64,000 bases of DNA from positions 186,001 through 250,000 of the forward strand of contig NIVC01000038.1 in assembly GCA_002269645.1 (NCBI GenBank). The letters are read 5' to 3'. The stretch is from Macrostomum lignano. Taxonomy: Eukaryota. The notes below the pieces were generated by a model. It was given only the letters and a program-made list of their open reading frames with translations. It was not told where the DNA came from and searched no databases. This document shows, piece after piece, positions 7,941 to 61,871 of the stretch; within the stretch, counting starts at the first letter, position 1, and the number at the start of each line of letters is the position of its first letter. The translations under genes were made by a program, and so were the position numbers.

Positions 7941-10900
7941 ATGTCGTCCGAAATTCGACTGCCGACATTAATTCTAGTTCTGACGCTGGCTTGGCATCGA
8001 GCTTCGTGTGCTTCAGTTTCAGAAGACTTATCCGCAGGTGAGTTGGGGTTTTAAGGTAGCTTAAATGACTGTTAATAAGTTTTCCACTGCTTTTTAATAT
8101 GAAGGTTCTGACGAGGACGCCAACGAATTGGCGCGGACGAGGCGAGCCGCCTGCAGCGAGGGCGACTGCAAGAATGGCGGCATTTGCTGGCCGGGTGCTG
8201 TGACGTCAAGCACTCCTCCGTGTCTGTGCACTGAGGCGTACACTGGTAAATATTGCACCAATAGAATAAACTTCTGTGCTACATACTCAGGCAGTCCCTG
8301 CCAAAACGGAGGCACCTGCAGCAACACAGACGCGAGCCCCTGGTATCACTGCAGCTGCGTTCCCGGCTACACAGGTGCGTGACCCTTGCTGCAAATCAAA
8401 ATTTGAGCGAGGCGTTATGAAATTTAGGCGATATGAAATTTAGGCGATGTGAAGGAGCGTGCAGAAATTTTAGGCGTTGTGAAATTTAGGCGATGTGAAA
8501 TTAAGGCGTTGTGAAGGAGGCTGCATTTTCGATTTTAGGCGTTGTGAAATTTAGGCGTTATGAAATTTAGGTGATGTGAAGTCATGTGCTTTAGGCGTTG
8601 TGAAATTTAGGTCTTATGAAGCGCCCCCGTCCCGGGAAGCGGGTAATAGGGGGAAGGGAAGTGTTGAACACTTCTAACTGTACAAGCTTCGCAGGAGAGG
8701 GAAGGCGGAGCGCTTTAAATGACTAAGACTAGTCTATTTTTAGAACAATGTTCGGTTACAACCGCAAAGCAGGCCTTAATTATAGCCAGGCTGGCGGAGG
8801 AAAAAGTTATTCTCCTTCTCGATTTATTCTCTTGCTTATATATAAAACATAATCAATATGGCGTACGCGTTTAAACTAATAAAAACACTAGATTATACTG
8901 TAGGCTACTAATCGATACTAAGATTTACTATTAACGGTATAAAAGATTTATTTATGCAGGCACAGAGATGTTTTTAGCGATTTTGAGAAATAGTCGTATT
9001 TACTAAGGCGGTATACGTAAAATGATAGGCAAAAATAGTGACTCTTACAATCTCCAAAATCCCATCTTTGATCTCACAGATCCAATCCATCATTTCAAAG
9101 ATCCCATCCATTACCTCACAGATCCCATCCATTTTCTTACAGATCCCAGCCATCATCTCACAGAACCCATCCATCATCTCACAGATCCCATCCATCATCT
9201 CACAGAACGCATCCATCATCTCACAGATCCCATCTATCATCTCACAGATCTTATCCATCACCATCATCTCACAGATCACATCCATCATCTCACAGATTCC
9301 ATCCATCATCTCACAGAACCCATCCATCATCTCACAGATCTCATCTATCATGCCGCAGAACCCATCCATCGTCTCACAGATCCCATCCATCATCTCACAG
9401 AAAATATCCATCATCTCACAGATCCCATGCATTATCTCACAGAACCCATCCACAACCTCACAGAACCCATCCATCACCATACAGAACCCATCATTCATCT
9501 TACAGAGCCCATCCATCATCTCACAGATCCTAACCATCATCTCACAGATCTCATCCGTTACAGATCCCAACCATCATCTCACAGATTCCACCCATTATCT
9601 CACAGATCCCATCCATCATCTCACAGAACCCATCCATAATCTCACAGAACCCATCCATCATCTCACAGATCCCATCCATCATCTCACAGATCCCATCCAT
9701 CATCTCACAGATCCCATCCATCATCTCACAGATCTCATCCATCATCTCACAGATCCCATCCGTCATCTCGCAGATCCCTTTCATCATCTCACAGATCCCA
9801 TTCATCATCTCACAGATCCCATCCACCATCTCACAGATCCCATCCATCATCTCACAGATCCCATCCACCATCTCACAGCCCCTTCAAAACAGATGAGTTA
9901 TTTTCATTTTCCCTCCTCGTCATCTACATTGGTTTAAAAGTACATTTCGGCAAAGCTACGCGTAAAGCAATTCTCCGCATTGTAAAAATAAGAATTGTCA
10001 ACTGGTCAGTTGGTGTCAGGACACACGCCAGTCAGGACGGCATTCACGTAGAAATGCCTCAGCTGAGGTCTCTGATTATTTTTCTTTCCTTTCGATTTTG
10101 CAATCTGCTGCAGGCACCGACTGCAAGATCAACATTGATGACTGCGCCAGCAAGCCCTGTGCCAACGGCCTGTGCTCAGACTTGGTGAATGACTACAGCT
10201 GCAGCTGCTTCACAGGCTGGGAGGGCAGGAACTGCAACATCAACCACAACGACTGTCCGACGGGCGCCTGCCTCAATGGCGGCAGGTGCATTGATGGCAA
10301 CGGCACGTGAGTTCTTCTTGACTTGACTCAGCTGCTCAGACTTCACAGATTGGATACTGGGGGTTCGGTGCTTGAGGATGGGTTGTGGTTGGGTGCTTAA
10401 AGATGGATTGTGGTTGGGATGGTGCTTTGTTTCGCTATATACGAGTGTAGTCAATGATCGACATGACAAGTTCGAGTCTCGAGTGTTTGTACCGTGCTTA
10501 TAAGAATATTTATTTGCGTTTTTTAGTTTTCCGCCATGTTTTTGATTTTCTTTATTATTTACTTGTAAGCATCTTGAACTGACCATGCAAAATATGGTAT
10601 TGAGCCTAAATAAATGATTATCTGTTACGGGTGAAAGCATAGGGAAGCCTAATCTCCTCAGAAACTGCTGAAAGTTTTCTTAGTACTTGGAGCATATTAA
10701 GCGAAAAATTACTTGAACATGTTCCTCAAACAATTCTGATAGTCCTGCCTGAAAATTTGAGAGCAAAACACATACAGGAGACACGTATTGATTTACCCAA
10801 TGCTGGTCACATCTTCCGATGGGATTCTTCTTAGTCCGATTACAAATTCAAAACAAACACATTCTGGTAAAATGTCAATAAAAAGCAGTCTTGGCTCTCG

Positions 10901-13900
10901 GAGCTAAGAGAAGTTCTTTGCATCAGTATAACTCAAACAAGCCACTTACTTTTTTAGTAAGTGAGATTTGAAAAAGAAATTTGTTAAGAAATTCACTAAC
11001 ACTCATCAAAAGCCAAACATAGCCGAATGAAATCACCATCGTCATTTCAGATTCAGCTGCGACTGCTCTCGCGTCGACTTCCAAGGCGCCACCTGCAGCT
11101 CCAAGATCGATGACTGCGCGTCGAGCCCGTGCCAGCACGGCGGCAGGTGCATCGACGGTGTCAGGAGCTTCACGTGCGACTGCACAGACACGGGATTCGC
11201 AGGTGACAGGTGTCAAAACAACATTGATGACTGCGCCAGCAAGCCCTGCGCCAACGGCCTGTGCTCAGACCTGGTGAAAAACTACAGCTGCAGCTGCTTC
11301 ACAGGCTGGGAGGGCAGGAGCTGCTCAGTGGACACTGACTACTGCCTGTCAGGGCCCTGTCAGAACGGCGGCGTCTGCAGCGACGGAAACTCCACGTGAG
11401 TGGCTCAAAACTGATTGAGTTTTTTTCCTTGGGATAATCTTGCAGTTCTGAATCGTGCTACAGTTTTATCTGCATGGGTGTTTTTAGTTGAGTGCTTGGG
11501 GGTTTTGTTGGGTTTGTGTCGGATTGTAACTTTATTCTATCGTTATAGAGGATGTTGGGTGTTTGAGGATGGGTTGTGATTGAGTGCTTGGGTTGGATTG
11601 TAGTTGAGTGTTTGGGTTGGGTTGTGGTTGAGTGTTTGGGTTGGGTTGTGGTTGGGTGCTTGGGTTGGGTTGTGGTTGAGTGTTTGGGTTGGGTTGTGGT
11701 TGGGTTGTGGTTGAGTGCTTGGGTTGGGTTATAGTTGGGTTGTGGTTGGGATGGTGCTTTGATACGTTATATACGAGTGTAGTCAATGATCGACATGACA
11801 AGTTCGAGTCTCGAGTGTTTGTACTGTCGTATCACGTGACTCAGCGGGTGTACATTGAGTACATTCGCTGTTTTTTTTCGATTGACTGACAATGCTTTAT
11901 TGAGCGTGACTAGTGTGTGTGTTCTTTTAAAACCCTGTGCTTTTATGCATCAATTATTCTTACGTTCACTTATACCAAAAATATAAAAGTCGTCTAGTGA
12001 GCTCAGAGCTCAATACTTTTTTATTTCTCGCACTAACCACTATAGAGTTGTTTTAGTGGCGACGAGGATTGTGGCTGAGCAATGCCTAACCACGCAATCG
12101 GAGAATATGAGGACTCCGAGGAAACCTGGGATGAGTACCAGGAGCGTCTGGAGCAACATTTCCTGGCACAGGACATCACCGACGGAAGTAAAAAGAGGGC
12201 CACCCTGCTGAGCGTCTGCGGTAGGAAAACCTTCCAGTTGGCCAGAAGCCTCTGCTCTCCAGCCAAAGTCGCGGACAAATCCTATGCCGAAATATGCGAG
12301 CTGCTGAGCGCTCATTTCAACCCAAGGCCGAGCGAGATCATTCAGAGGTTCCAGTTCAATAACCGAGTTCAGCGCCCTGGAGAGTCGGTGGCAGAGTTCC
12401 TTGCGGAGCTGCGGAAGCTGGCGGAGTTCTGCAATTACGGCGGGAGCCTGTCTGACATGCTGCGCGACAGGCTGGTGTGCGGCATCGCGGACCAGCAAAT
12501 CCAGCGCCGGCTCCTGATGGAGGCCGAGCTGACCCTCGATACTGCCAAACAGATCGCGCAAGCGGGCGAGTCAGCAGCCAAAAACTGTCAATCGCTGGGC
12601 TCAGCAAAACCTGCGGCAGTGACATCGGCATCGTCAGCGACAGAGAGCGACTCCGTGCTTCGAATGGAACGACAGCGACCGCAAGACAGCCGTCAGTCTG
12701 GAACAGAAGGCCGGCGGCGCTGTTTCCGCTGCTTGTCGACTCGCCATCCGGCAGCCAAATGTCCCTTCGCGGACAAACGCTGTTTCAACTGCAGCAAAAC
12801 CGGGCACACCGCGAAGGCATGCAAGGCGGTGACACAGCAGCAGCAAATGCACCAGCTGGTTGACCAGCAGCCTTCAGACAGCAGCTCAGCTCAGGCCGCC
12901 GAGCCGCCCAGCCCAGCCGAGGTCGCTTATCCCTTCTACCATCTGGGTGCTGACCGATCGCAGGCCAGGTTTCCTCCAATCGTGACCTCTGTCTTCATCG
13001 AGGAGAAGCGATTCGAGATGGAGGTGGACACAGGGGCATCCGTATCGCTGATGTCCGAACGTACGTTCAAGGAAAACCTGGGAAGCCGGATGTCTCTGTC
13101 TGCGTCAACGGTTCAGCTCAGTACGTACACCAGTCAAACCGTCCGTGTTCTCGGTTAGCTCTTCGTACGCGTGCGAGCTTCGCAAGGTTCGGCCGAGGAA
13201 CAGCTGCCGCTGCTGGTTGTCGCCGGTTGTGGTCCGAGCCTCCTTGGTCGAGATTGGCTACACCGCCTGCGGCTGGACTGGCAATCTATCAAGCGGATGG
13301 AAGAAGCTGATGCAGCCAAGGAGTTGCTACAGGAGTTCTCAGAAGTCTTCCAAGGTCTGGGCGAGTTCAGCGGCAAGCCGGTGTCCATCAGTCTGAAGGA
13401 GAACGCCAGACCAAGGTTCTATAAGGCGCGGCCGGTGCCGTTTGCGCTGTGCGAGAAGGTTGAGCAGCAGCTGCAGAAGGAAATCGACCAAGGAATCCTG
13501 GTGCCGGTCAAAAACTCCGACTGGGCGTCCCCGATCGTGCCGGTAATGAAGTCCGACGGCAGCGTGCGCATCTGCGCTGATTTCAAGCAGTCGGTCAACG
13601 CAGCTATCCGGCCTGAGGCTTACCCGCTGCCGAACATCGACGAGCTATTTTCACGCTTGGCTGGCGGTAAGAAGTTCTCAAAACTGGATCTGAGCCAGGC
13701 ATTTTCGCAGCTTCCCCTGGATGAGGATGCTCAAGAGCTCTGTACCATCAACACCTCGCTGGGACTTCTTCGCTACACCCGTCTGCCTTTCGGCGTGTCG
13801 ATCGCCCCAGCGTGTTTCAGCGGGTGATGGACAGCTTACTGCGAGGAATTCCGCACTCTGCATCCTTCATCGATGATGTCATCATCACAGGCGAAGACGA

Positions 13901-16900
13901 CGCCAGTCACCTCCGCAACCTGAGAGCAGTTCTGAAGGTCTTCAAGGAGTCCGGGCTGACCTGCAAGCTTGAGAAGTGCACCTTTTTCAAGGACGAAGTC
14001 ACATACCTAGGCCACCGCATCGACGCCGAAGGGCTGCACCCGCTGGACGATAAGGTTCGAGCTGTGCTGGACGCGCCTGCACCGACTAACACGACTCAAC
14101 TGAGGAGCTTCTTGGGCCTCATTAACTACTACGGCAAGTTTTTGCCAAATCTCTCTAGTGTTCTGGCCCGCTGCACAGGCTCTTGGAGAAGAACACAAGG
14201 TGGCAGTGGGATCGCAGCGAGGCGGACGCGTTCAGCGCGGCAAAGCAGCTGCTCACGCACCCCAGCGTCCTAGACCACTATAACGCTGCAGAAGAGCTCT
14301 ACCTGGAGTGCGACGCATCGCAGTACGGGCTCGGTGCCGTCATATTCCACCGTCGGGACGGCATGGACAAGCCAATCGCGTACGCTTCGCGCAGCCTCAG
14401 CTTAGCAGAGAAAAATTACTGCCAGCTGGAGAAGGAGGCCTTGGCGCTGGTTTTCGGTGTGAAAAAATTCCATCACTATCTGTTTGGTCGGGAGTTCAAC
14501 CTGTTGACCGACCACCGGCCGCTTCTCGGCCTTCTAGGACAAGAGCGACCGCTTCCAGCCCTGGCTTCCGGCCGAGTCCAACGATGGGCGTTGCTGCTGA
14601 CCGCGTACCGGTACCGTCTTGTACACCGCACCGGGGTCTCCATGCTCCGAGCAGACGCCTTAAGCCGCCTTCCTGCATCAGCTGGCCCTAAGGAAGTTCC
14701 GGTGCCTCCAGAAGTCGTGCAAGTGATGGACTGCCTAGACGCCGGGCCGGTGACTTCATCAGACGTGCGCACCTGGTCCCGCCGCGACCCTACATTGTCA
14801 CGCGTAATTCTTTACTGTCTCTCGGCCTGGCCAGACCGGGATTCCTGGACTTCCGATTTGGTGCCCTTCGGAAAACGGCACCAGGAATTGTCAGTTCAAG
14901 ACGGCTGTGTTTTCTGGGGCAGTCGTGTCGTCATTCCTGAAGTCGGCCAAAGCCGCTTGCTCGACTGCCTGCATGTTGGACACCCTGGAGCATCCCGGAT
15001 GAAGTCGCTTGCCAGAAGTTACATATGGTGGCCGGGCATGGATCGTGACATTGAGGCCAAGGCAGCAAAATGCATGGACTGCCAGAAGCACCAGTGAGCC
15101 GGACCAGAAGCTCCGCTGCAGCCATGGTCGCTAACGGCAAGGCCTTGGTCGAGAATCCACGTAGATTTTGCCGGTCCCGTCCAAGGTCGGATGCTGCTGG
15201 TGGTGGTCGACTCCTTCTCAAAGTGGCTCGATGTGTACGTGACGACAGCGACGACGACCTTCGCAACAGTGGAAAAGCTGCGACAGAGCTTCAGCACTCA
15301 TGGCCTACCGGAGACCATCGTCTCGGACAATGGGCCCTGCTTTGCCAGCTTCGAGTTCGACGCCTTTTGTGCCAAGAACGGAATTCGGCACATCCGCACG
15401 CCACCCTACCACCCGGCTTCCAATGGCCAAGCTGAGCGAGCAGTGCAAACTGTTAAGAACTCCCTGAAGAAGCAGGCCAATGACGGCAGCTCCCTGGAGA
15501 CCCAGCTGGCCAGATTCCTGCTCAGCTACCGTACTACTCCGCATCCAACGACGGGAGGGGCACCGTGTGAGCTGCTGATGCACCGGACGCTGCGTAGCCT
15601 GCTCGACGTACCGAGGCCAGACATAGCCAAGCGAGTTCTCGAGAGCCAGGAAAAGCAGAAGCAGCAGCACGACTCGGGCGCACAAAGACGAGTCTTCGAG
15701 AAGGGCGAGGCGGTGTTCGTTCAAGACTTTAGCCGCGGGAACGAGCGAACCTGGACATCGGCTATGGTGGTCGGCAAGGAGGGCAGCAACTGGTACAAGT
15801 GCATTCTGCGGAACAACCGGATGGTGCGGCGGCACACAGAACAGATGCGAATCGACAAGATTTCCCAGCGGCCTGGGCCGCTGCAGACGAATCCGGAATT
15901 TAGTGGTGAGCTCAGGCCTCCACTACCGCAACCGTTGGTTCCGCCGCCACCGCCGCTGCAGCTGCCACCGCCACAGCCACCGTCGCCGCCGCCGCCGCCG
16001 CCAACGCCGCCGCCGCCGCCAACGCCGCCGCCAACGCCGCCGCCACCGTCGCAGCCTCGACCGCTGCAACTTCCAGATCAAGGACCAGCACAAGCTCTCA
16101 GAAGATCAAGCAGAGCTCGATCGATTCCCGTCCGCCTAAACTACGATGGGAGAGGTCGTATCGCGTGACTCAGCGGGTGTACATTGAGTACACTCGCTGT
16201 TTTATTTTATCGATTGACTGACAATGCTTCATTGAGCGTGACTAGTGTGTGTGTTCTTTTAAAACCCTTGTGCTTTTATGCATCAATTATTCTTACGTTC
16301 GCTTGTACCAAAAATATAAAAGTCGTCTAGTGAGCTCAGAGCTCAATACTTTTTGATTTCTCGCACTAACCACTATAGAGTTGTTTTATGTACCGTGCTT
16401 ATAAGAATTTTTATTTGCGTTTTTTAGTTTTCCGCCATGTTTTTGATTTTCTTTATTATTTACTTGTAAGCATCTTGAACTGACCATGCAAAATATGGTA
16501 TTGAGCCTAAATAAATGATTATCTGTTACGGGTGAAAGCATAGGGAAGCCTAATCTCCTCAGAAACTGCTGAAAGTTTTCTTAGTACTTGGAGCATATTA
16601 AGCGAAAAATTACTTGAACATGTTCCTCAAACAATTCTGATAGTCCTGCCTGAAAATTTGAGAGCAAACACATACAGGAGACACGTATTGATTTACCCAA
16701 TGCTGGTCACACCTTCCGATGGGATTCTTCTTAGTCCGATTACAAATTCAAAACAAACACATTCTGGTAAAATGTCAATAAAAAGCAGTCTTGGCTCTCG
16801 GAGCTAAGAGAAGTTCTTTGCATCAATTTAACTCAAACAAGCCACTTACTTTTTTAGTAAGTGAGATTTGAAAAAGACATTTTTTAAGAAATTCACTAAC

Positions 16901-19900
16901 ACTCATCAAAAGCCAAACATAGCCGAATGAAATCAACATCGTCATTTCAGATTCAGCTGCGACTGCTCTCGCGTCGACTTCCAAGGCGCCACCTGCAGCT
17001 CCAAGATCGATGACTGCGCGTCGAGCCCGTGCCAGCACGGTGGCAGGTGCACCGACGGTGTCAGGAGCTTCACCTGCGACTGCACAGACACGGGATTCAC
17101 AGGTGACAGGTGTCAAAACAACATTGACGACTGCGCCAGCAACCCTTGCAGCCACAACGCCACCTGCGTTGACGGGCTCAGAGACTTCAGCTGCAGCTGC
17201 TTCAGCGGCTACTCGGGAAAGAACTGCTCCGATGACGAGCAGGACTGCTCGCCGAATCCGTGCCAGTTCGGTGGCGCCTGTCTGGAGCGCAGCAACCAGG
17301 CTCTGTATGGAAACTCACCGCTGCCAGCGCCGTTCAACGGCAGCTTCAGCTACGCGCTGGCTGCCGGGTTCGTCTGCCTCTGCCCACATGGTGAGGAGGT
17401 CGTGTACATCCTATTGACTGTGTAGATTCTAATCTATAAGCATATTTATTTAACTGCAACAGGTACCTACGGAGACAACTGCTCCATCAACCCGAACGAC
17501 TGTCTGGATCCGGCCACCAACCGTAGCGTGTGCGCTCACGCGTCAAACTGCACGGACGGCCTGGCCTCATTCACCTGCCACTGCCTGCCTGGCTACGAGG
17601 GCCCGATCTGCTCAGTCGACATCAACGAGTGCGAGCGGTTCGGACAGCCGTGTCAGAACGGAGGCGTCTGCAAGGACCTGGTAGCGGATTATGCCTGCAC
17701 CGGCTGCCCCGCTGACTACGGAGGCAAAAACTGCAGCGTCAAACTGACTGGCTGCGACTCCAGCCCGTGCCACATTAATGCTACTTGCGAGCCTCTGCTT
17801 CTTCAGGAACTGCCGTCACTTGCTCACGGCTATCGCTGCACCTGCAAGCCTGGCTGGTCTGGACCGCAGTGCAACGAGACCACTCTGGCGTCATTGAACG
17901 GGACGTCCAGTTTCAGCGCCAATTTTAGTACAACAGCTGACTGCACCTTCGAGCTGTCATTTCGCACGAGTCTCGCTCACTTCGATCTGGTCCGGCTCTC
18001 GTCTCACTGGGGAGAAATCCGAGTCGGCGCTCACGAATCCAGTCTCGTGCTGTTTTTCATCAATGCCTCATCGTCTGTGATTGATCAAGCCGCTTGGCCA
18101 ATCAGTGCCAGCTTGGCTTCTACTGATTGGCTGACACTGTCGGTCTCGCTGACCAATGGCAGAGCGACATTGAGTCACAGTGAGTCAGGAGTGACTCAAT
18201 TGCCTGGAGAACAGCTAGTGGACGGACTGTCGGACTCATTCAAGCCGAACAGTCGACTGTCAGTTCGTGTCGGCGTCGAGAGCGGATCCGGGATCGACGG
18301 CAGCGGCGGCTTCCGTGGCTGCGTGAGAGACCTGCGGCTCGTGACGAACGACTCGACATTGGTCGCTACGGAGATCACGGCGGAGTCGAGCAACTCGACC
18401 TGGGGAGTCTGCAGTCGGTCGATGCAGTGCGGCAGCCCGTCGCCTTGTGAAGCAAAGACGAGCTCGATGTGCTCAGATATGTGGAACGACTTTGTGTGCC
18501 ACTGCGCTGCGGACTTCGGAGGCCTGCGCTGCTCCGTTGAGCTTCCATCGTTCTCACTGGGTGTGGGCGGCAGCGTGTCATCAGCGATGTTCGCGTCTGC
18601 AGCAGGTGTGTCAAGTGTGTATGGCGGAGACTCGTGGACGATTGAGCTGAGGCTGGTGACTTTGTCTCGAGGAGCGTTTCTGCTGCTGCTGGGCGACCCG
18701 AGTGACTCGGCGACCACTCCGAGACTGCTCACTACGGTCAGTGTCATTGTGGTACTCCTCTGTAGACGTTCAATGTGTTTTAATGTCAGTTTTTGCTTTT
18801 AAATCTTTTCAGATCGATCACTCTGGTCGTATGTCCGCCCAGTTACTGCACGGCAACGGCTCCCTCATCGCAGCGCTGACGTCCTCAGACTCGGTGGCCA
18901 CCGGCGACTTCGTCTCCGTGAAGATCTCCGTGTCGATATCGGGTCGCTCGCTGTCGCTGTCAGTGTCATCTTCAGTCAGGTCGGCATCGCTGAGCAGTGC
19001 GAGTCCGCTGCCGCAGCCGTCAGGCCAGCTCATCATCGGCGGCTTCAGCGGTCTTCGAGCAGCTCCGGCTCCGTCGCCCGATTCCACAGGCCTGGCCGCT
19101 TCTAGAACAAAGAAATCGGCAGATGTCTCGCTGTCCAGAGTTGCTTCAGCGGCAGGAAATGTCACCGCGTTTCGGGGCTCGCTGAGGTCAATCAAGGTGA
19201 ACGGTGACACTCCACTGATTCTGGTTGCTGGGAATGACAGCTTCGAGGGCCTCACAGGTGCCGTGGTAGCCAGCGAGTCGAAAGATATTGTCCCAGGAAT
19301 TTTCAACAATACCGTGTGCGAAGAGTTTCGACCTTGTAGAAATGGAGCGGCCTGCACTAACGGGCTCTACTATTCGTACCGGTGAGCTTATTGTCAATGT
19401 CTTTAGTTAAACATTTCTGCTGCAGTCCATGGCTAAATTGCTTTGATACCACCGGATGCCTCAATTTCAGGTGTGTTTGCCACCCGGGCTACTCGGGCGA
19501 GGACTGCTCCGTCGACCATCCCGACTGCAGCTCGAATCCGTGCGGCGCCGACTCGTTCTGTCTGGAGCGAAGCATTGAAGCTTTGTACAGCAATGCGTCC
19601 AGCCTGGCGCCATTTAACGGCTCCTTCAGCTACTCGAAGGCTGCGGGCTTTGAGTGCGTGCGCATAATGGCACCGACTGAGACTGCCGCCAGTAGTGAGG
19701 CTGCCGCCTGTAAGTAGTGAGGCTGCCGCCAGTAAGTAGTGAGGCTGCCGCCAGTAAGTAGTGAGGCTACCGCCAGTAAGTAGTGAGGCTGTCGCCAGTA
19801 AGTAGTGAGGCTGTCGCCAGTAAGTAGTGAGGCTGTCGCCAGTAAGTAGTGAGGCTGTCGCCAGTAAGTAGTGAGGCTGTCGCCAGTAAGTAGTGAGGCT

Positions 19901-21749
19901 GTCGCCAGTAAGTAGTGAGGCTGCCGCCAGTAAGTAGTGAGGCTGCTGCCAGTAAGTAGTGAGGCTGCCGCCAGTAAGTAGTGAGGCTGCCGCTAGTAAG
20001 TAGTGAGGCTGTCACTAGTAAGTGGTGAGGCTGTCACTAGTAAGTAGTGAGGCGGTCACTAGTAAGTGGTGAGGCTGTCACTAGTAAGTAGTGAGGCTGT
20101 CACCAGTAAGTAGTGAGGCTGCCGCCAGTAAGTAGTGAGGCTGTCGCCAGTAAGTAGTGAGGCTGTCGCCAGTAAGTAGTGAGGCTGTCGCCAGTAAGTA
20201 GTGAGGCTGCCGCCAGTAAGTAGTGAGGCTGCTGCCAGTAAGTAGTGAGGCTGCCGCCAGTAAGTAGTGAGGCTGCCGCTAGTAAGTAGTGAGGCTGTCA
20301 CTAGTAAGTAGTGAGGCTGTCACTAGTAAGTAGTGAGGCGGTCACTAGTAAGTGGTGAGGCTGTCACTAGTAAGTAGTGAGGCTGTCACCAGTAAGTAGT
20401 GAGGCTGCCGCTAGTAAGTAGTGAGGCTGTCACTAGTAAGTGGTGAGGCTGTCACTAGTAAGTAGTGAGGCGGTCACTAGTAAGTGGTGAGGCTGTCACT
20501 AGTAAGTAGTGAGGCTGTCACCAGTAAGTAGTGAGGCTGCGCTGTGTATCACAAATTCCCATCAGACAAGAAAGATTTATCAATTTCGTTGCGAAATCGG
20601 TTTTCATGTCTGAAAGGCCTAACTGCAGATTTGCTCGAGTTTTGTGTCAAAAACCGTGTCGGAACAATTGATCGTTTCGATGCCTCGATGCTCATACTTC
20701 AATAGTCTCATTCAATCGAACTCTTTACCTATTACAGATGACTTTCTTCCCACGTGGACAATTGCGGCCATTGCTGTGGCAATCTTCATATTTGGAGTTC
20801 TTCTGACAGTTTCCGTGTTCCTCCTGCTGCTCAACCGGCATCGAAACGTGAGTCTCTGCACGCCAGTCATTTTAATAAAACCCTACGAGTATATACAAAT
20901 GCCTAATTATCATCATAAATATAAATTTCAGGGCAAGCTGTCACTTGGATATTTCGAGAGACAGGTATTCCCTCTATTATCGTAAAACAGTCAAAATTAT
21001 TGTATATTTACTGATTGAATATTGTTTCTTCACCTTTGAGGCCCCCGTTCTGGAGAATGCGAAACGAAGAAGTGCAGCGAAGGTTTTGAGCGATCTGAGA
21101 GACCGTCTGAGCTCGCGCAGTGAGCACACCTACCTGGCATCTGACAGGCGTCCGGTGAGACCTCTGCTCACAGTCATGCTGATGGCCTCATCATGAAAAA
21201 TATTGTGACACTATAGCCTGATTGTATCTGCTTAAGCAAGTTCTTGGCATAAATTTGTTGAAATGTACTTTTGCTAAAAAGTGTAACGTTTAGAGTTTAA
21301 ATATTTTAACGAGCCAGATGGATGGACAGATTAGTAGATTTAGTATCTAGGTACGAGTGTAGATGAAGAAATGAATTATATTTTGTACACTAATAACTAC
21401 TAACTTCATGAATTTGCAGCAAATATCTACCGTCGAAAAGTACGAAATGGCTCCATACGATGTGATCAACGATGCGGAGACAAAGCCGGATGAAGTCTCT
21501 CCTGAGCAGGTTTGCTACTCGCAATTGATTTGTTTGCCTACCAGAAAGAGTTGCGCTGAGCAAACTGTGAGCAGCAATTCCTGCTTCAACCCGCTGTAGG
21601 AAGTCGAACCTGCGGCCGGCTCCAATCGGTTCAACAGCGAGCTGTCATCAGCCTACGATGTGATCCCGGACCTGACGGCGAGCCAGAAGCAGCAGAACCA
21701 GAGAGCTGCTCAGCAAGTCAAGAGCAATCAACCAGAGGAGTGCTGCTGA
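7941..21749 (+). CDS. Gene 2: Crumbs-like type-I receptor (SP, propeptide, 13 EGF, LamG, EGF, LamG, EGF, truncated EGF, TM, Tyr-motif tail), ~1307 aa
   Basis: Exons 7941-8037, 8105-8374, 10114-10306, 11051-11395, 16951-17390, 17463-18736, 18813-19381, 19471-19709, 20738-20847, 20932-20964, 21041-21154, 21420-21509, 21600-21749; phases join and sum to 3924 nt. Signal peptide MSSEIRLPTLILVLTLAW, Ca-binding EGF repeats, Crumbs-type CLERSNQALY...FSYALAAGFVCLC, TM WTIAAIAVAIFIFGVLLTVSVFLLLL. Confidence 0.85.
9075..9880. repeat. 21-bp intronic minisatellite ACAGATCCCATCCATCATCTC (gene 2 intron 2)
   Basis: Tandem units; homologous arrays at 34485-35035, 48935-49515 and 63505-63655. Confidence 0.95.
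11825..16388 (+). mobile_element. Full-length Ty3/Gypsy (Mag-like) LTR retrotransposon in gene 2 intron 4
   Basis: LTRs 11825-12055 and ~16154-16388 (~96% identical by eye), TSD TGTAC (11820-11824, 16389-16393), PBS TGGCGACGAGGAT 12057-12069, short PPT at 16148-16154. The empty-site sequence survives in the duplicated intron at ~10488-10492. Confidence 0.95.
12082..16168 (+). pseudogene. Gypsy gag-pol (two CCHC knuckles, protease VDTGA, RT FIDD, RNase H CDAS, integrase), disrupted
   Basis: In-frame TAG 13156-13158 and TGA 15095-15097; 1-nt frameshifts near 13811 and 14168; Pro-rich C-terminus. Confidence 0.92.
19710..20540 (+). repeat. 22-bp splice-donor minisatellite GTAAGTAGTGAGGCTGCCGCCA (gene 2, pre-TM intron)
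   Basis: About 38 units starting exactly at the exon 8 donor. Confidence 0.96.
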
Positions 21750-21945
21750 CTGCTCACTGCTGCCTGCTGAATGCTGACTGGTGACTGCTGACTGCTGACT
21801 GCTGACTGCTGACTGCTGACTGCTGACAGCTGACTGCTGACTGCTGACTGCTGACTGCTGACTGCTGACTGGTGACTGCTGACTGCTGACTGCTGACTGC
21901 TGACTACTGACTGCTGACTGCTGACTGCTGACTGCTGACTGCTGA
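21743..21945. repeat. 7-bp (TGCTGAC)n repeat at the gene 2 stop codon
   Basis: About 29 units overlapping TGC TGC TGA. Confidence 0.93.
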
Positions 21946-22629
21946 GCTGCTGAAGGTCAGCTGCCAAGTGTGGTGTTGCTGCGGCATGATTGTTTTATGA
22001 TTGCAACCAGTTAACTTTTCACCGTTCCATTTCCTGTGGCTTCATGCTTTTTTCAAATAATGCTTTTTTGATCTAACACTAACTATTACTACAGTATCTA
22101 GAAAAAATTTTGTTTAACTTCATTCCAAGCCAGTTTACGTTACTGATATTGTACATGTAGCTCGTAGTGGCCTCTTGTGGCCTCAATAGACTCTCTGCGA
22201 TCCAATTAAAATAATTTATTCGCACTGTTTATTTACCTGTTAAATCTTTCGCACAACGTTAATTTGAATTTGTAAAATTTCTTTTGTTAATTTGCGTCAT
22301 TTCATCACTGTCTTGGGGGCGCTGTTTTAGGAGCGCCATCGTTGGGCGCCAAAGTACGATCATAGTTGGTGAGGGGACTGCTAAACTTGGGAACCTGCTG
22401 CGAAAAAGGCGCAAAATCTGCAGTGAATTGGGCACCATAGCTAGATTGACTGGGGGATTCAGTCTCCAAAGCACCCGCTGGCTACGCCCCGGGTTAATCG
22501 ACAAGTTAGCCACTAAATAGTTGGTAATTGCTTTATTCTTTCAACAATAACAAATAATAATTCTTGCGGGCCCTATTGCGGCACAGTAACGCAGATTGTA
22601 GCTCTATTCCGTAATCTAGGAGTCGCGGA

Positions 22630-33290: not shown

Positions 33291-34484
33291 CAGCTCAAAG
33301 TTCAAAATTGTCTAAAAATGATCGACCTTAAAATTGGAAAGTGACAGTTCAGAACCGCCGGGTCGGTCTTAAATAGCGAATTTCAATGCTTTTTCAGTGT
33401 GCATTTTTCAGTAGTCACAAAATAATTCAATGCTTTTTAGCGTCAAAAAAGTTGTGTTTTGCCTGAGCCCCAGCCAGCTGCTTGAAATGAAAATATACCT
33501 GCGACTGATTTTAATTACTTTTATTTTTTATTAACCAGTATGGCAAATCTGATTCTTATTTCAATATTCATTATCTCATAAGTAGCATATTCAGCACAGC
33601 TATACTAATTTCTTATATTTCAATTGATTCAAATTTGCTTCAATTTGATTTTCAGCTTCTCAAAGTTGCGCGAGTTTCAAACTAGATAAGCCTCAGCTCT
33701 GAGCTCGTCCGGAATGTCGTCCGAAATTCGACTGCCGACATTAATTCTAGTTCTGACGCTGGCTTGGCATCGAGCTTCGTGTGCTTCGGTTTCAGGAGAC
33801 TTATCCGCAGGTGAGTTGGGTTTTAAGGTAGCTTAAATGACTGTTAATAAGTTTTCCATTGATTTTCAATATGAAGGTTCTGAGGAGGACGCCAACGAAT
33901 TGCACGGACGAGGCGAGCCGCCTGCAGCGAGGGCGACTGCAAGAATGGCGGGATTTGCTGACCGGGTGCTGTGACGTCAGACACTCCTCCGTGTCTGTGC
34001 ACTGAGGCGTACACTGGCACTTATTGCACTGATAGGGAACAATTCTGTGCAATCCTTGCCAATCCTTGCCAAAACGGAGGCACCTGCAGCAACACAGATG
34101 CGAGCCCCTGGTATCACTGCAGCTGCGTTCCCGGCTACACAGGTGAGTGACCCTTGCTGCAAATCAAAATTTGAAACTTCAAAAAATGTTTTAGAACTAC
34201 TATTATCTCAATAAATTTGTAAAATTGTTGACTTAGGGTGAACCAGATCAATTCAATCGAACTTAAAATTTTTATTTATGTTTTTATGTTTTTAACGTGG
34301 AAGTTTTTAACAGAAAGTTTATTTTGTAAAATTTATAAAGAATAATTTAACAACATTGCATCACGATTGTAGCAAAGCTAACAATTGACTTAAAATTCCC
34401 GAAATCTTATCTCGATTTCTGTCTAGCAAACGAATACAATCATTCCATACAATAAGACACCTAACAAAACTCGTACAGCCTCTC

Positions 34485-35035
34485 AGAGATCCCGTCCATC
34501 ATCTTAAAAATCCTATCTTTATTCCCACAGAACCCATCCATCATCTCACAGATCCCATCCATCACCTCACAGATCCCATTCGTCACCTCACAGAACCCAT
34601 CCATCATTTCACAGATCCCATCCATCATCTCACAGATCCCATCCATTACCTTACACATCCCATCCATCATCTCGCAGATCCCATTCATCATCTCACAGAT
34701 CCCATCCACCATCTTACAGATCCCATCCATCATCTCACAGATCCCATCCATCATCTCACAGATCCCATCCATTACCTTACACATCCCATCCATCATCTCG
34801 CAGATCCCATTCATCATCTCACAGATCCCATCCACCATCTTACAGATCCCATCCATCATCTCACAGATCCCATTCATCATCTCACAGATCCCATCCACCA
34901 TCTCACAGATCCCATCCATCATCTCACAGATCCTATTCATCATCTCACAGATCCCATCCATCACCTCACAGAACCCATGCATCATCTCAAAGATCCCATC
35001 CATCATCTCAAAGATCCCATCCACCATCTCACAGC
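34485..35035. repeat. 21-bp intronic minisatellite (gene 3 intron 2)
   Basis: Same unit as 9075-9880. Confidence 0.93.
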
Positions 35036-35499
35036 CCCTTCAAAACAGATGAGTTATTTTCATTTTCCCTCCTCCAATGTCATCTACATTGGTTTAAAAG
35101 TACATTTCGGCAAAGCTACGCGTAAAGCAATTCTCCGCATTGTAAAAAATATGAATTGTCAACTGGTCAGTTGGTGTCAGGACACAAGCCAGTCAGGACG
35201 GCATTCACACAGAAATGCCTCAGCTGAAGTCTCTGATTATTTTTTCCTTCCTTTCGATTTTGCAATCTGCTGCAGGCACCAACTGCGAGATCAACATTGA
35301 TGACTGCGCCAGCAAGCCCTGCGCCAACGGCCTGTGCTCAGACTTGGTGAATGACTACAGCTGCAGCTGCTTCGCAGGCTGGGAGGGCAGAAACTGCAGC
35401 ATCAACCACAACGACTGTCCGACGGGCGCCTGCCTCAATGGCGGCAGGTGCATTGATGGCAACGGAACGTGAGTTCTCCTTATTGACTTGACTCAGCTG

Positions 35500-35880
35500 C
35501 AGGGGGCTCTGGGCATCCGCGGATGCTGCGGAGAGGCGTCAACGCCCATTCCGCTCACCTCTGGCGACCACGGGAAGCTGGTGCTGTGGTGTCGCGCAGG
35601 GAGATCTGCAGGATGGTAGACAATGAGATAGCGGGCGATCCGGCAAAAATTCCCAGTCCTGAAAGCATAGAAAAAATCGGGTTCTGGCCGAGGTAGGTGA
35701 GCCTGTCTTTGTAAGGCCGGCATTCACAGATGAAGTGCTCCGCATTCTCAACACCGGAGATGCATAAAGGACTTTCCTCACTGGCAAATTTTTACCTGAA
35801 GGTAGCGATGTCTGGCAAAACAGAATTGGCATGAGAGGGCCATTGTTACCACCCTGATGTCCCTGCGGTTGAGTTCTTCA
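35500..35880 (-). mobile_element. 3' fragment of an I/R1-type LINE (C-terminal CCHC region)
   Basis: Minus-strand LNRRDIRVVTMALS...PLCISGVENAEHFICEC...DRLTYLGQNP across a frameshift; absent from the homologous intron of gene 2. Confidence 0.6.
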
Positions 35881-38800
35881 ATTTTCGTTAGTAAAGTATC
35901 GAGATAGGTACTTTCCTGTTTCGATTCTAAATTTTGCTTCTGTAGTGGCTACTTAAACTAATGAATACAGTGTAATTACGACTCTGAAACTATATAACCT
36001 TACTCTGAGTTTCATAACCGGACTAGAGTGCCGAGTTTTCTGCTTACGAGCTCGTAAATCTCAGATTCACCTGCGACTGCACAGACACGGGATTCGCAGG
36101 TGACAGGTGTCAAAACAACATTGATGACTGCGCCAGCAAGCCCTGCGCCAACGGCCTGTGCTCAGACTTGGTGAAAGACTACAGCTGCAGCTGCTTCACA
36201 GGCTGGGAGGGCAGGAACTGCTCAGTGGACACTGACTACTGCCTGTCAGGGCCCTGTCAGAACGGCGGCGTCTGCAGTGACGGAAACTCCACGTGAGTGG
36301 CTCAAAACTGATTGAGTTTTCTTCATTGGGATAATCTTGCAGTTCTGAATTGTGCTGCAGTTTTGACTGCATGAATTCCAGAGAGTTTAGTTCTCCCTTT
36401 GTTGGGCTGATTTGATTCTTGGGATTATGTGCTTGGTGGGTTGTGATCTGGTGCTTGCTGTTGCTTGTTTGGGCTGGTGCATGGGAATATGTTTAGCTGA
36501 GTGCTTTGGATTGGGTCAATTGTGGTTGGGTGTGTCAGGGGTGAGTGCTTTGTTTTGTGTGATTGGGGATGGGTTTTACTTGAGTGCTTGGGATTGTGCT
36601 GGGGTTAAGTGCTTAGAGTTAGATTTTGGTTGGGTGCTGGAGGTTTCGTGCCTGGTGTTGATTTGTTCGGTTTGAGTCACTCTGGTTGCTTTGTAGTTAG
36701 GTACTTTGAGTTGGGTGCTTGGATTTGGGTTAGAATTGCGTTCTTGTTGAGTTAGATGCTTGGGGTTGGATAGTGGTTGTGTGCTTGAGGATGGGTTGTG
36801 ATTGAGGATGGGATGTTTTTGGGTGCTGGAGTTGGGTTCTGGTTCGGCGCTTGAATGTGTATGCTCTAGACAGGGTCTTCAGCGTTGGGTTCTTAGTGGC
36901 TGAGGTATATTAGGTTCGCTTCTATCATATATATAGTTATGGATAGGTATGTTTAGGAGCTGGAAGTTAGATTTTCGAGCGTTTGCACAGTGTCTTAAAG
37001 TCGTAACAAAGCGGATACAAAAAACCGAGCTGCCATACAACATGGCTATAATACCTCGCTTCCAAGCTGCAATCGCTGAAGGTGAAGATCTGCTTCTGCG
37101 CTACCTATACAAATGAAGAATATATTGTATAATATTGAGTAAGCAGGCACTTACACATTACATCTGTCGGACCCAGTGACCCACTGAACAGAGAGCAGAG
37201 TCGCTGCTGAATGCTCTAACGATTGGATGAAGAATTTTCATTCGAGTACTGATGGTTCAAGTATCGACGGATTTTTATTCAATAACCGGTTCTTGTTGAT
37301 CCTTCTCTAATCACTTTTACCTTGACCGCATCCAATTGCTCGAATTTAGATCTCTCATTTACAAGTTTCAACGCACCGATGTTGAAGCTGAAAAATGTAT
37401 GAATATCCTAAGAAACTGATGAAGGTTTCTAGTACTATTAAATCAAAATTACTGCTAAGCGTTTCTCACATAATTGCGATCGTTGAGTATGATAATATAA
37501 GAAACAACGCATTTGGGATACGTATTGATTTAAGTCATTGCTGGTCAGAATTACCAATATCGTTATCTCTCAGAGCAAGAAGTTTTTACATCAGTTTAAA
37601 CCACACATTTCTACGTATGTAAGCTTTGAAAACATATATTTGTTAAAATTAATTTCACTAACCAAGAACCAACAGCACAATTAAAGCATGTTTCCCAATT
37701 GTAGGCAATTCAAATATCAAAAGCCAAACTAGCGATATGAAATCAACGTCGCCATTTCAGGTTCACCTGCGACTGTTTTAGCGTCGACTTCCAAGGCGCA
37801 AAATGCAGCTCCAAGATCGATGATTGCAGGTTGAGCCCGTGCCAGCACGGCGGCAGGTGCATCGACGGCGTCAGGAGCTTCACCTGCGACTGCCTGCCCG
37901 GCTACGAGGGCCCGACCTGCTCAGTCGACATCAACGAGTGCGAGCGGTTCGGACAGCCGTGTCAGAACGGAGCCGTCTGCAAGGACCTGGTAGCGGATTA
38001 TGCCTGCACCGGCTGCCCCGCTGAGTTCGGAGGCAAAAACTGCTCCGTGCTGCTTCCGCTGCACTCGTTCGGCATAAGCGGAGTTGTATCGTCTGCGAGT
38101 TTCGCTTCTCTGCCAAATGCGTCAAGTGTGTCTGGCGGAGACTCGTGGACGATTGGGCTGAGGCTGGTGACTTTGTCTCGAGGAGCGTTTCTGCTGCTGC
38201 TGGGCGACCCGAGCGACTCGGCGACCACTCCGAGACTGCTCGCTACGGTCAGTGTCCATTCTGTTGCTCTTTAGTGGGTTGCATCAGGTCTTTTAAAGTC
38301 AATGTTCGTTTTAATATTTTCAGATCGATCACGACGGCCGTCTGTCCGCCCAATTGTTACACAGTAACGGCTCCCACATTGCAGCCTTGACATCCCCAGA
38401 CGCGGTGGCCACCGGCAGCTTCGTCTCCGTGAATATCTCTGTGTCGATATCGGGTCGCTCGCTGTCGCTGTCAGTGTCATCTTCAGTCATTTGGGCATCG
38501 CTGAGCAGTGCGAGTCCGCAGCCGCAGCTGTCAGGCCAGCTCATCATCGGCGGCTTCAGCGGCGCCAAGGCAGCCCCAGCTCCATCTTTTAATCCCAGCC
38601 GCCGATCAAAACGATCAATGGCGTCACTGCCAACTGACGTTGCTCATCTTCTTTCATCAAATATTTCTGCGTTTCGAGGCGTTATAGCTGCCCCCAGAAT
38701 CAATTCAGTTTGGCCGTTGATCCTCCAGCAAGACGATTCCAGTTGGACCGAGAGGCTTCCAGGAGCCATTTTTGCCAGCAAGTCAGTAGGAGTCGCTTTT

Positions 38801-39030
38801 ATCACTGAAGCTAAAACTATTTGCGAGACTTCGGAATCTTGTCAGAATGGCGCTACGTGTTGGAATGTTTTCTTTGTCACCTATAGGTAAGTTTAGGAAT
38901 AATAGTATGAAATTGTCATTTTTATCGTACCAGACTCACATGCGTTGCAGGTGTGAGTGCGCAGCTGGGTGGCGTGGTCCCACGTGTTCTGACAAGGATT
39001 CAAAGCAAGACGCGAATGAGACTGCCGCCT

Positions 39031-39440
39031 GTAAGTAGTGAGGCTGCCGCCTGTAAGTAGTGAGGCTGTCGCCAGTAAGTAGTGAGACTGTCGCCAGTAA
39101 GTAGTGAGGCTGCCGCCAGTAAGTAGTGAGGCTGTCGCCAGTAAGTAGTGAGGCTGTCGCCAGTAAGTAGTGAGGCTGCCGCCAGTAAGTAGTGAGGCTG
39201 CCGCCAGTAAGTAGTGAGGCTGTCGCCAGTAAGTAGTGAGGCTGTCGCCAGTAAGTAGTGAGGCTGTCGCCAGTAAGTAGTGAGGCTGTCGCCAGTAAGT
39301 AGTGAGGCTGCCGCCAGTAAGTAGTGAGGCTGCTGCCAGTAAGTAGTGAGGCTGCCGCCAGTAAGTAGTGAGGCTGCCGCCAGTAAGTAGTGAGGCTGCC
39401 GCCAGTAAGTAGTGAGGCTGCCGCCAGTAAGTAGTGAGGC
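39031..39440 (+). repeat. 22-bp splice-donor minisatellite (gene 3)
   Basis: About 18 units starting at the pre-TM donor. Confidence 0.95.
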
Positions 39441-41479
39441 GCCTCAGTCTTTGAGGTGTGAAATGCAGTCAATGCTATTGCAGTTGCAGTAATATCTGGT
39501 TTGTTGTATAACAGAATCTGCATTCACTTAAAGTGAATATCCGCACTTTCTTACCCGCTAGCCACTCACAAAAAAACCATTGCGCTGTGTATCCAAAACT
39601 CCCATCAGACAAAAGAGATGTTTCAAATTCGTTGCAAAAACTGCTGTAATTCGAAAATCTTTTGAAAGAAATATTTTTGCTCGATATTGAAGATCTGTTT
39701 TCATGTTTAAGAGGCCGAAAATGCAGATGGGTTCGAGTTTCGAATTTCGAAAAAAGAGTCCAGCACCATGTCACAAAGACCATGCCACGATGCTCACACT
39801 TCAAAATTCTCATTCATTTCAACCTTTTACCTATTAAAGGTGGCTTTCTTCCCACCTGGGCAACTGCAGCCATTTCTTTGGCAACCTTCATATTTGGAGT
39901 TCTTCTGTCAGTTTCCGTGTTTCTCCTGCTGCTCAACCGGCATCGGAACGTGAGTCCCTGCTCGGCCAGTTCCTTCAACAAATCCTATATACTATGTCTA
40001 ATTGTCATCATAAATATGAATTTCAGGGCAAACTGTCACTTGGATACTTCGAGAGACAGGTATTCACTCCATTACTAAAGGAATGGTGCCAATTATTTAG
40101 TGATTAAATTCCATTGCTTCACCTTTCAGGCCCCCGTTTTGGAGACTGCGAAAAGAAGAAGTGCAGCGAAAGTTTTGAGCGATCTGAAAAACCGGCTGAC
40201 TTCGCGCTGTGAGCACACCTACCTGATATCCGACAGGCATCCGGTGAGACCTCTGTTCAGATGCAGTCATGCTGATGGGGCCTCATCGCTGCTGTCTCAT
40301 GTTAGAAATATTGTAACAGTATAGGTTTCATTGGCAACGTTAATGAGGTCATTGAGGTATGAGATAAATAGGTAAATAGAGAGACTTACTATCTATACTC
40401 AGCAACATTGAAAAGTTTCCACCCTAGCGTGCGAAGGGTCAACGTGGATTTTAGAATCCTGTAAGCTGCTGCTGTCTGCTCCATGTGACTGTTTTCTTCG
40501 GCGTCTATGACCCAAGTTTTTGTCAATGGCACAAATGCGTGTTGACGAAATCATCAATCGTCTATGGCACAAGTCTGGCGACTCAAACCAGTTTTGAAAC
40601 TCTAAATATACACTTTTCACTGTTGCATTCAGTAAAAAAATACATTGAATTTTTAGCAAATCTCTACCGTCGAAAGGTACGAAATGGCTCCATACGATGT
40701 GATCAACGATGCGGAGACAAAGCCAGATGAAGTCCCGCCTGAGCAGGTTTGCTACTCGCAATCTGTTTGCTTAACTGAAAGAGTTGCGCTGAGCAAACTG
40801 TGAGCAGCAATTCCTGCTTCAACCCGCTGTAGGAAGTCGAACCTGCGGCCGGCTCCAATCGGTTTAACAGCGAGCTGTCATCAGCCTACGATGTGATCCC
40901 GGACCTGACAGCGGGCCAAAAGCAGCAGAGGCAGAAAGCTGATCAGCAGCTCAGCAATAATCAACCAGATGAGTACTGCTGATCTGCTGAGGGCGAGCTG
41001 TCAAGTATGGTGTTGTTGCAGCATGATTATTTAACTTTTAAACTGGCAAACTTTTTAGCCATTTTTAGGGTTCCATACTTTAGTAAAATAATTATTATTC
41101 TGTACAAAACACTTTGCTGATTGTCTTTTTGAGCCAGCTTATGTTACTGATACTGCAGATCTCGCTGACATGGCGGCTTCCATCCTAAATACTAAAAATG
41201 AGTTGTCTGTAAATCTATATGAGAATGTGATTGATTGCAGATAAAACGGCTCAACCGATATTATTGAAACTTATATTCTCAGCGCTTCCGTTGATGAGTT
41301 TATTGCACTGTTAATTATCCTTTTAAAGCTTTTGCACAACGTTTAATGTTCAATTTATAAATTTTATTGAGGTAACTTATGTTTAAGATGTATCGTGGTT
41401 TTCAGGTCGGTATTTGTTCGGCTCAAGGGATTTAGAGTGAAATACCGACCGTAAAAACCATGATATATCTATTTTAAAC

Positions 41480-61690: not shown

Positions 61691-61871
61691 GAGATGCCTG
61701 CTTTTCCCATCGCTTTTGCAAGAATCATATTTCACAACGTTGATTTTTTTCATTTTTAAGCCAACCTTTAACAGAAGTTTGGATTTAAAACACTGGTGAA
61801 GTTTGCGCCTTGTGAAATTTTGCTGTTATAAAATTTAGATGTTACGTAATGAAATGAAGTTTACATGAGCA

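Follow-up and report, generated by a model that had tools for sequence, protein, structure and literature searches.

This study concerns a tandem gene family of the flatworm Macrostomum lignano, located in a 64,000-nucleotide stretch of contig NIVC01000038.1 (positions 186,001 to 250,000 of the forward strand), which we refer to as the window. The window contains a head-to-tail array on the + strand, comprising the end of gene 1, the whole of genes 2, 3 and 4 and the start of gene 5. These genes represent at least five tandem copies of a family of type I membrane proteins with a Crumbs-like ectodomain, composed of epidermal growth factor (EGF) repeats and laminin-G domains. The interval 20932-21749 covers the four exons that close the coding part of gene 2 and encode its cytoplasmic tail, the main subject of this work. 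The genes are placed as follows.

End at 742, + strand: gene 1 (PAA92815.1, BOX15_Mlig022007g1, protein P0009); 417-742 covers its last two exons, a 90-nucleotide (nt) exon at 417-506 and the last exon at 593-742
About 8100-21749, + strand: gene 2
About 33900-40982, + strand: gene 3
About 48400-55303, + strand: gene 4
From about 62900: gene 5, start only

The 33- and 114-nt tail exons of gene 1 are intact and lie just upstream of the window start, in L002, position 13127 of which is window position 1 (the genomic loci of the family are designated L001-L005); the initial 10.7 kb of the window match this locus of NIVC01000038.1 (assembly GCA_002269645.1) without a difference. The transmembrane (TM) segment and the tail of gene 2 are encoded by the following exons.

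20738-20847, + strand: TM exon, …FLPTWTIAAIAVAIFIFGVLLTVSVFLLLLNRHRN, entered in phase 1 and left in phase 0, a helix in the AlphaFold2 (AF2) model
20932-20964, + strand: tail exon 1, 33 nt, a juxtamembrane micro-exon encoding GKLSLGYFERQ, with Tyr 7
21041-21154, + strand: tail exon 2, 114 nt, APVLENAK…SEHTYLASDRRP, in which the basic stretch APVLENAKRRSAAKVLSDLRDRLSS is followed by SEHTYL, with Tyr 42
21420-21509, + strand: tail exon 3, 90 nt, QISTVEKYEMAPYDVINDAETKPDEVSPEQ, with Tyr 57 and Tyr 62 and the first YDVIxD at 21456-21473
21600-21749, + strand: tail exon 4, 150 nt with the stop codon, EVEPAAGSNRFNSELSSAYDVIPDL…EECC and stop, containing …NSELSSAYDVIPDLTA…, with Tyr 98 and the second YDVIxD at 21654-21671

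The tail thus comprises 128 residues, including five tyrosines. All four tail exons have AG acceptors and GT donors; the four tail introns are in phase 0, and the intron preceding the TM exon is in phase 1. The four-exon structure proposed in a preliminary description of this DNA, with its lengths of 33, 114, 90 and 150 nt (with the TGA stop counted in the last), its phase-0 borders and its motifs, was borne out by translation, by the splice borders and by the GenBank coding sequence (CDS) of gene 1. The same holds for the modular, all-phase-0 build with a tyrosine in every tail exon. Genes 2, 3 and 4 all encode the motifs LGYFER, EH(T/N)YL, YEMAPYDVI and SAYDVI, and the last two are also found in the part of gene 1 within the window. 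In the CDS of gene 1, the TM exon is followed by exons of 33, 114, 90 and 147 nt, the same exon types as in gene 2. The gene annotation of M. lignano was built on a genome-guided RNA-seq assembly (PMC5730564). As the RNA-seq-derived CDS of gene 1 is spliced identically, the exon model is independently confirmed and the gene is transcribed; the tail exons are real and transcribed. The 12-mer TACGATGTGATC had been described as common to both YDVI motifs, which applies to seven copies. It occurs seven rather than eight times because the SAYDVI of gene 4 uses GTT.

With regard to conservation, the tail shows a synonymous divergence (dS) of about 0.2 and a ratio of nonsynonymous to synonymous divergence (dN/dS) of 0.22-0.39 in pairwise comparisons of genes 2-4, and is under moderate purifying selection. 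The lowest tail dN values are found in the 33-nt exon, which has 0 nonsynonymous and 1-2 synonymous changes among genes 2-4, and in the 90-nt exon, with a dN of 0.014-0.058 against a dS of 0-0.18. The 114-nt exon is the most variable (85-88% nt identity). Protein changes are nearly absent from the 5' half of the last exon, whose first 27 residues are changed in gene 1 only (among genes 1-4); the C-terminus that this exon encodes is variable and Q-rich. Both YDVI copies sit in the best-conserved tail blocks, those with the fewest amino-acid changes, which are also predicted to be disordered. YDVI occurs twice, each time followed by xD, and two identical Yxxx 4-mers arise in only 0.25% of composition-matched shuffled tails; the repeat is non-random.

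The weight that had been placed on the conservation of the tyrosines in genes 2-4 was not upheld. The introns of the paralogs align at 71-99% identity, and 98 of the 128 tail residues are invariant in genes 1-4, so that all five tyrosines would be invariant with a probability of about 0.26. Since the four copies are young and/or homogenised, the conservation of their tyrosines is uninformative. Likewise, SAYDVI is kept in all copies, which are 84-93% identical, as descent alone predicts.

Outside the tail, Pfam detected EGF repeats and two laminin-G domains (Laminin_G_2) in the upstream exons, and the best full-length matches outside Macrostomum are vertebrate CRB1 proteins, with 23-26% identity over 94-95% coverage and E-values down to 9e-68 for a 681-residue ectodomain query. 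As in the apical polarity determinants Crumbs and CRB1-CRB2, EGF repeats alternate with laminin-G domains in a type I membrane protein with a single TM segment. The tail of Crumbs is short and carries a FERM-binding motif and a C-terminal ERLI PDZ-binding motif (PMC3564977). In contrast, the tail of the window's genes has 128 residues in four exons and variable C-termini (ECC, EYC, ECR). The preliminary description had reported that GTY and ERLI are absent, and neither of these marks of a short Crumbs tail was found in any of the four tail types described below. In a further difference from Crumbs, the genes form a large tandem family, apparently lineage-specific. The protein is a variant Crumbs-like receptor restricted to this lineage, and its modular tail of tyrosine motifs is new.

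The tail itself retrieved only M. lignano proteins in peptide searches (87-91% identity), and when phmmer was run exhaustively against 1.84 billion representative proteins, the query itself was the sole relative recovered. The one phmmer match outside Macrostomum, P0024, a bacterial repeat protein, was spurious, being aligned to the out-of-frame N-terminus of the query model P0003. There is no Pfam family for the tail; a match to DUF5089 (E = 0.0039, 17.5 bits vs a cutoff of 36.1) was under threshold and was disregarded. A PDB sequence search with P0009 matched EGF and laminin-G (LamG) domains and gave no match to the tail, and literature searches on Mlig022007, on YDVI and SH2, on M. lignano crumbs and on invertebrate immunoreceptor tyrosine-based inhibitory motifs (ITIMs) with EGF or laminin-G domains found nothing relevant.

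In the AF2 model, which has low confidence overall and relies on a 3-sequence alignment, the TM helix runs on through the basic part of the 114-nt exon to about residue 61, and the predicted local distance difference test score is below 50 across EHTYL, YEMAPYDVI and SAYDVI. The three C-terminal tyrosine motifs would accordingly lie in predicted disorder, the setting expected for short linear motifs. The tail can be divided into the juxtamembrane micro-exon, a basic, probably helical segment (KRRSAAKVLSDL…, a low-confidence prediction) and an acidic, putatively disordered segment with the two YDVIxD.

A search with the ectodomain identified M. lignano paralogs with four kinds of C-terminus, whose tails were mapped to loci L001-L005.

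Type A, genes of the window: TM exon, then 33, 114, 90 and 150 nt; LGYFER, EHTYL, YEMAPYDVI, SAYDVI
Type B, P0008 (also P0006): TM exon, then 72, 78 and 135 nt; PYTFADYDRI, SPYAGVYETS, TYDNL
Type C, P0010: TM exon, then 72, 75 and 126 nt; GYLS, KYAEP, QYASA, EYANE, IYANQ
Type D, P0007, P0011 and P0013: tail in the last exon, which it shares with the end of the TM segment; …GPTGVRVGHLR.DG..P.PQEVFF

Every tail intron of types A, B and C is in phase 0. In types B and C, the TM exon ends in phase 0 and is followed by three short phase-0 exons with 5-6 tyrosines in 94-99 residues; across the three types, 5-6 tyrosines are found per 94-133 residues. Short phase-0 exons and a high tyrosine content are thus family traits of types A, B and C, although the first tail exon of type B has no tyrosine. 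The check on more distant paralogs named in the preliminary description came out mixed: types B and C are rich in tyrosine, but the YDVI and ITIM-like motifs are not kept and the type D tail is different. Moreover, the tyrosines of types A, B and C could not be matched one by one, as MAFFT, BLASTP and by-eye pairings contradict each other; YTFADYDRI of type B, for example, pairs with either YEMAPYDVI or EHTYLASDR of type A. As the tails are unalignable, positional conservation of any tyrosine cannot be claimed.

The motifs of the sister tails nevertheless have a recognizable character. Type B carries YDRI, YAGV and YDNL, type C carries YAEP, YANE and YANQ, and type D has a single-exon tail. 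Types B and C together contain three YxN (shuffle P = 0.009 in a post hoc test) and one YxxP (YAEP). YxN and YxxP are classical SH2 patterns, of the Grb2 and the Crk/Abl type, respectively. The residue at +3 is often not hydrophobic (YANE, YANQ, YAEP, YETS), and because of the Glu or Gln at +3 in YANE and YANQ these motifs look SH2-like rather than YxxΦ-like. They may thus mildly shift the family-level reading toward phosphotyrosine docking and away from YxxΦ sorting.

The family is also a mosaic. Despite their different tails, proteins of different types are 76-96% identical on the N-terminal side of IIGGFSG, a sequence of the second LamG domain, and 30-48% identical on its C-terminal side. 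The breakpoint, seen in P0006-P0011, falls at the following positions in the window.

19032-19052: IIGGFSG of gene 2
38543-38563: IIGGFSG of gene 3
52951-52971: IIGGFSG of gene 4

This pattern suggests 5' homogenisation or 3' cassette swapping.

As every tail intron is in phase 0, any tail exon could be dropped in frame, and isoforms with different motif sets are possible from this layout. The closest analogue in gene architecture is PECAM-1 (CD31), an analogy and not a homology. Its cytoplasmic domain is encoded by the short exons 9-16, with tyrosines in exons 9 and 12-15, and alternative splicing can remove exons one at a time, among them exon 14, which has 19 residues and a tyrosine that controls function (PMC2132561). 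The tail of gene 2 shares with it short symmetric exons with at least one tyrosine each, a motif-per-exon tail removable in frame. PECAM-1 differs in its Ig-superfamily ectodomain, in ITIMs shown to bind SHP-2 and in its documented isoforms; the M. lignano protein has an EGF/LamG ectodomain and no sequence similarity to PECAM-1, and in-frame skipping is here a possibility offered by the gene layout.

Evidence for skipping from gene models is weak. In the UniProt/WormBase models P0001, P0002 and P0027 and in the run-on model P0026, NRHRN is joined straight to (A/T)PVLENAK and the 33-nt exon is omitted, and it is included in P0003 and in the RNA-seq-based P0009. The models lacking it are presumably an older predicted annotation of a different assembly, and prediction-type models commonly miss micro-exons. 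A second case is P0006, a type B' member in L003 (NIVC01000114.1), which has an in-frame TAG at 15406-15408 in its middle tail exon (15349-15414), so that the annotated protein ends in …YATADRI. Its last exon (15514-15648) is intact, 75% identical to that of P0008, and retains SPYAGVY and TYENL. Either skipping or a nonsense change of recent date would fit the stop and the intact last exon.

The intron that separates the two last exons is 86-90 nt long and its last 52 nt, which precede the SAYDVI exon, are 100% identical in the four gene copies although flanking synonymous sites differ, a conservation exceeding that of the flanking exons.

541-592: 52-nt block, copy in gene 1
21548-21599, + strand: 52-nt block in gene 2, the last 52 nt of the 90-nt intron
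40781-40832: copy in gene 3
55102-55153: copy in gene 4

The block is non-coding, given a stop in gene 4, and gave no Rfam match; in an RNA fold of marginal signal (z = -2.0), it is paired to the region of the 5' splice site. The block may reflect a short tract of gene conversion or may serve to control splicing. A model in which the 90-nt intron is retained and codes for an alternative C-terminus was ruled out by an in-frame stop early in the intron of gene 4. An origin of the 90-nt exon as a duplicate of the last exon was unsupported: similarity stops at YDVIxD, and local alignment at the nt level recovers the 12-mer alone (codon-shuffle P = 0.012; protein shuffle P = 0.12).

Taking these results together, we tentatively favor, at somewhat short of an even chance, a disordered docking tail with short tyrosine-based linear motifs, in which YDVIxD would be phosphorylated and read by SH2 domains favoring a hydrophobic residue at +3. 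The two YDVI tyrosines would be the functional core of this linear-motif platform. They would most probably be phosphorylated and dock putative partners of the Src-family or Nck/Dock type of SH2 proteins; when unphosphorylated, YDVI could double as a YxxΦ sorting signal. Several observations weigh against this docking function. The YDVI core fits the YxxΦ pattern bound by the mu-subunits of adaptor protein (AP) complexes and the Atg8-interaction pattern [WFY]xx[LIV] equally well, although we attach little weight to the Atg8 fit of Y-x-x-I. The conservation of the tyrosines in the window's copies is that expected by descent, no homolog of the tail exists beyond M. lignano among the proteins searched, and the AF2 model is of low confidence. 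Furthermore, no similarity among tail types A, B and C has statistical support (BLASTP E = 2-16), and type D tails lack such tyrosine motifs.

The alternative that survives best, which we nonetheless consider rather unlikely, is that the YDVI motifs act unphosphorylated as YxxΦ sorting signals, bound by AP-1 or AP-2 mu-subunits and controlling endocytosis or polarized delivery; sorting would then replace the FERM/PDZ-based apical retention of true Crumbs. Both YDVI match Y-x-x-[LIMFV] and would be accessible, being placed in a predicted disordered region far from the membrane, and the absence of the Crumbs retention motifs from the tails is consistent with such a replacement. However, at least two YxxΦ matches are found in 20% of shuffled tails, and sister tails keep their tyrosines often without a hydrophobic +3. 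Binding to a mu-subunit would also leave the invariant Asp at +1 and the Asp at +5 unexplained.

We regard it as unlikely that the tyrosines have no motif-specific function, the tail being a fast-evolving, lineage-specific spacer whose copies resemble each other through recent tandem duplication and gene conversion. This would account for paralogs that align through their introns, for an intron between the last two exons that is conserved as much as the exons or more, and for the chance expectations given above for five invariant tyrosines and below for the ITIM pattern. The restriction of the tail to this species and the unrelated tail sequences of other family members are in line with it. 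On the other hand, dN/dS stays well under 1, dN being lowest in the 33- and 90-nt exons, and chance rarely produces an identical YDVIxD repeat. Disordered regions are usually poor in aromatic residues, whereas tyrosine makes up 4-6% of the predicted disordered segment in three independent tail types.

The preliminary description had also likened SAYDVI to an ITIM. SAYDVI does fit the consensus [S/I/V/L]xYxx[I/V/L] in all four genes, but as a single match of low specificity, the pattern being found in 17.6% of composition-matched shuffled tails. That it is a true ITIM, possibly together with APYDVI, recruiting, once phosphorylated, a tandem-SH2 phosphatase of the SHP-2/Corkscrew type for an inhibitory signal, appears improbable from the sequence. 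The second YDVI lies 36 residues upstream of SAYDVI, a spacing near the range seen in paired ITIMs, and the last exon of type B encodes one match, SPYAGV, which has Ser at -2 and is kept in type B'. APYDVI, with Ala and not Thr at -2, fails the rule for this position and is by consensus neither an ITIM nor an immunoreceptor tyrosine-based switch motif. In addition, the -2 and +3 positions are untraceable in the diverged, unalignable tails, and the Asp at +1 is unusual for SHP-1/2 ligands and atypical of known SHP-binding ITIMs. An inhibitory, SHP-recruiting function is possible, and nothing specific points to it. An activation motif of the ITAM form (immunoreceptor tyrosine-based activation motif, Yxx[LI]-x(6-12)-Yxx[LI]) is absent, since the YDVI tyrosines are 36 residues apart and the tyrosine of YEMA, 5 residues before that of the first YDVI, has no L or I at +3.

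Finally, although the mosaic structure would suit it, we consider it very improbable that the family is the flatworm equivalent of paired or diversified immune-type receptors. In such a system, near-identical N-terminal ectodomains, joined at the sharp breakpoint within the second LamG domain to at least four old, divergent membrane-proximal/TM/tail cassettes (with YDVI/ITIM-like motifs, with YxN/YxxP Grb2- or Crk-like motifs, or motif-free), would wire one ligand-binding module to opposing or alternative outputs, in-frame skipping adding isoforms and the 52-nt block regulating inclusion of the SAYDVI exon.

The remaining features of the locus are as follows.

8100-20736, + strand: ectodomain exons of gene 2, with EGF repeats and two laminin-G domains
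21743-21953, + strand: (CTGCTGA)x30 microsatellite, which provides the last Cys codon and the stop of gene 2 and the start of its 3' untranslated region
39840-40982, + strand: TM and tail of gene 3; TM exon 39840-39949, tail exons 40027-40059, 40130-40243, 40657-40746 and 40833-40982
54223-55303, + strand: TM and tail of gene 4; TM exon 54223-54323, tail exons 54403-54435, 54513-54626, 54974-55063 and 55154-55303

A counterpart of the (CTGCTGA)n microsatellite is found in gene 1 at 738-1150, and such repeats may underlie the variable C-termini. The ectodomain region of gene 2 contains a long terminal repeat (LTR) retrotransposon at 11826-16388, with gag-pol-like open reading frames (ORFs) and two LTRs, at 11826-12055 and 16155-16388, which share 95.7% identity. 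A 0.8-kb duplication with an EGF exon (10488-11301 and 16389-17204, 96% identical) directly adjoins its 3' LTR. Large intronic tandem arrays occupy equivalent positions across the paralogs, at 19691-20539, 39017-39443 and 53607-53819 and at 9050-9880, 34526-35034 and 48932-49539. One of these arrays repeats a 22-nt unit 38.6 times and lies in the intron before the TM exon; another, in an upstream intron, has a unit of about 21 nt. Between genes 4 and 5, a set of small ORFs at 61155-61740 codes for a single EGF-like module, a 'CLERSNRALYG' module and a TM-like segment that is followed by a short basic tail. It may represent either a truncated member of the family or an independent mini-gene; a similar piece is present at L003:19939-20028, in the other family cluster on NIVC01000114.1. 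The minus strand of the tail interval has only short, unsupported ORFs, and an Rfam scan of the whole window gave no match. As for existing annotation, the UniProt names of the M. lignano models P0001-P0005 and P0026 (Calsyntenin-1, LAMTOR1, Cubilin, Notch, Secreted protein) are not backed by domain content. P0026, with 3471 amino acids, is a run-on fusion of several tandem copies, and the TM exon and the 33-nt exon are read out of frame in P0003.

A lesson of this analysis is that tandem paralogs provide weak evidence through their conservation, as does a single match to the ITIM pattern. The competing explanations are testable, since M. lignano is amenable to transgenesis and RNA interference. 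If the YDVI motifs are sorting signals or neutral, the array would represent an ordinary lineage-specific expansion of a gene family. If, however, their tyrosines truly serve as phosphotyrosine docking sites, a Crumbs-type ectodomain for adhesion and polarity would have been rewired to tyrosine-kinase/SH2 signaling in a flatworm. The rewired receptor would then have been amplified as a tandem family with interchangeable tails, a clear case of evolution by tail-cassette swapping.

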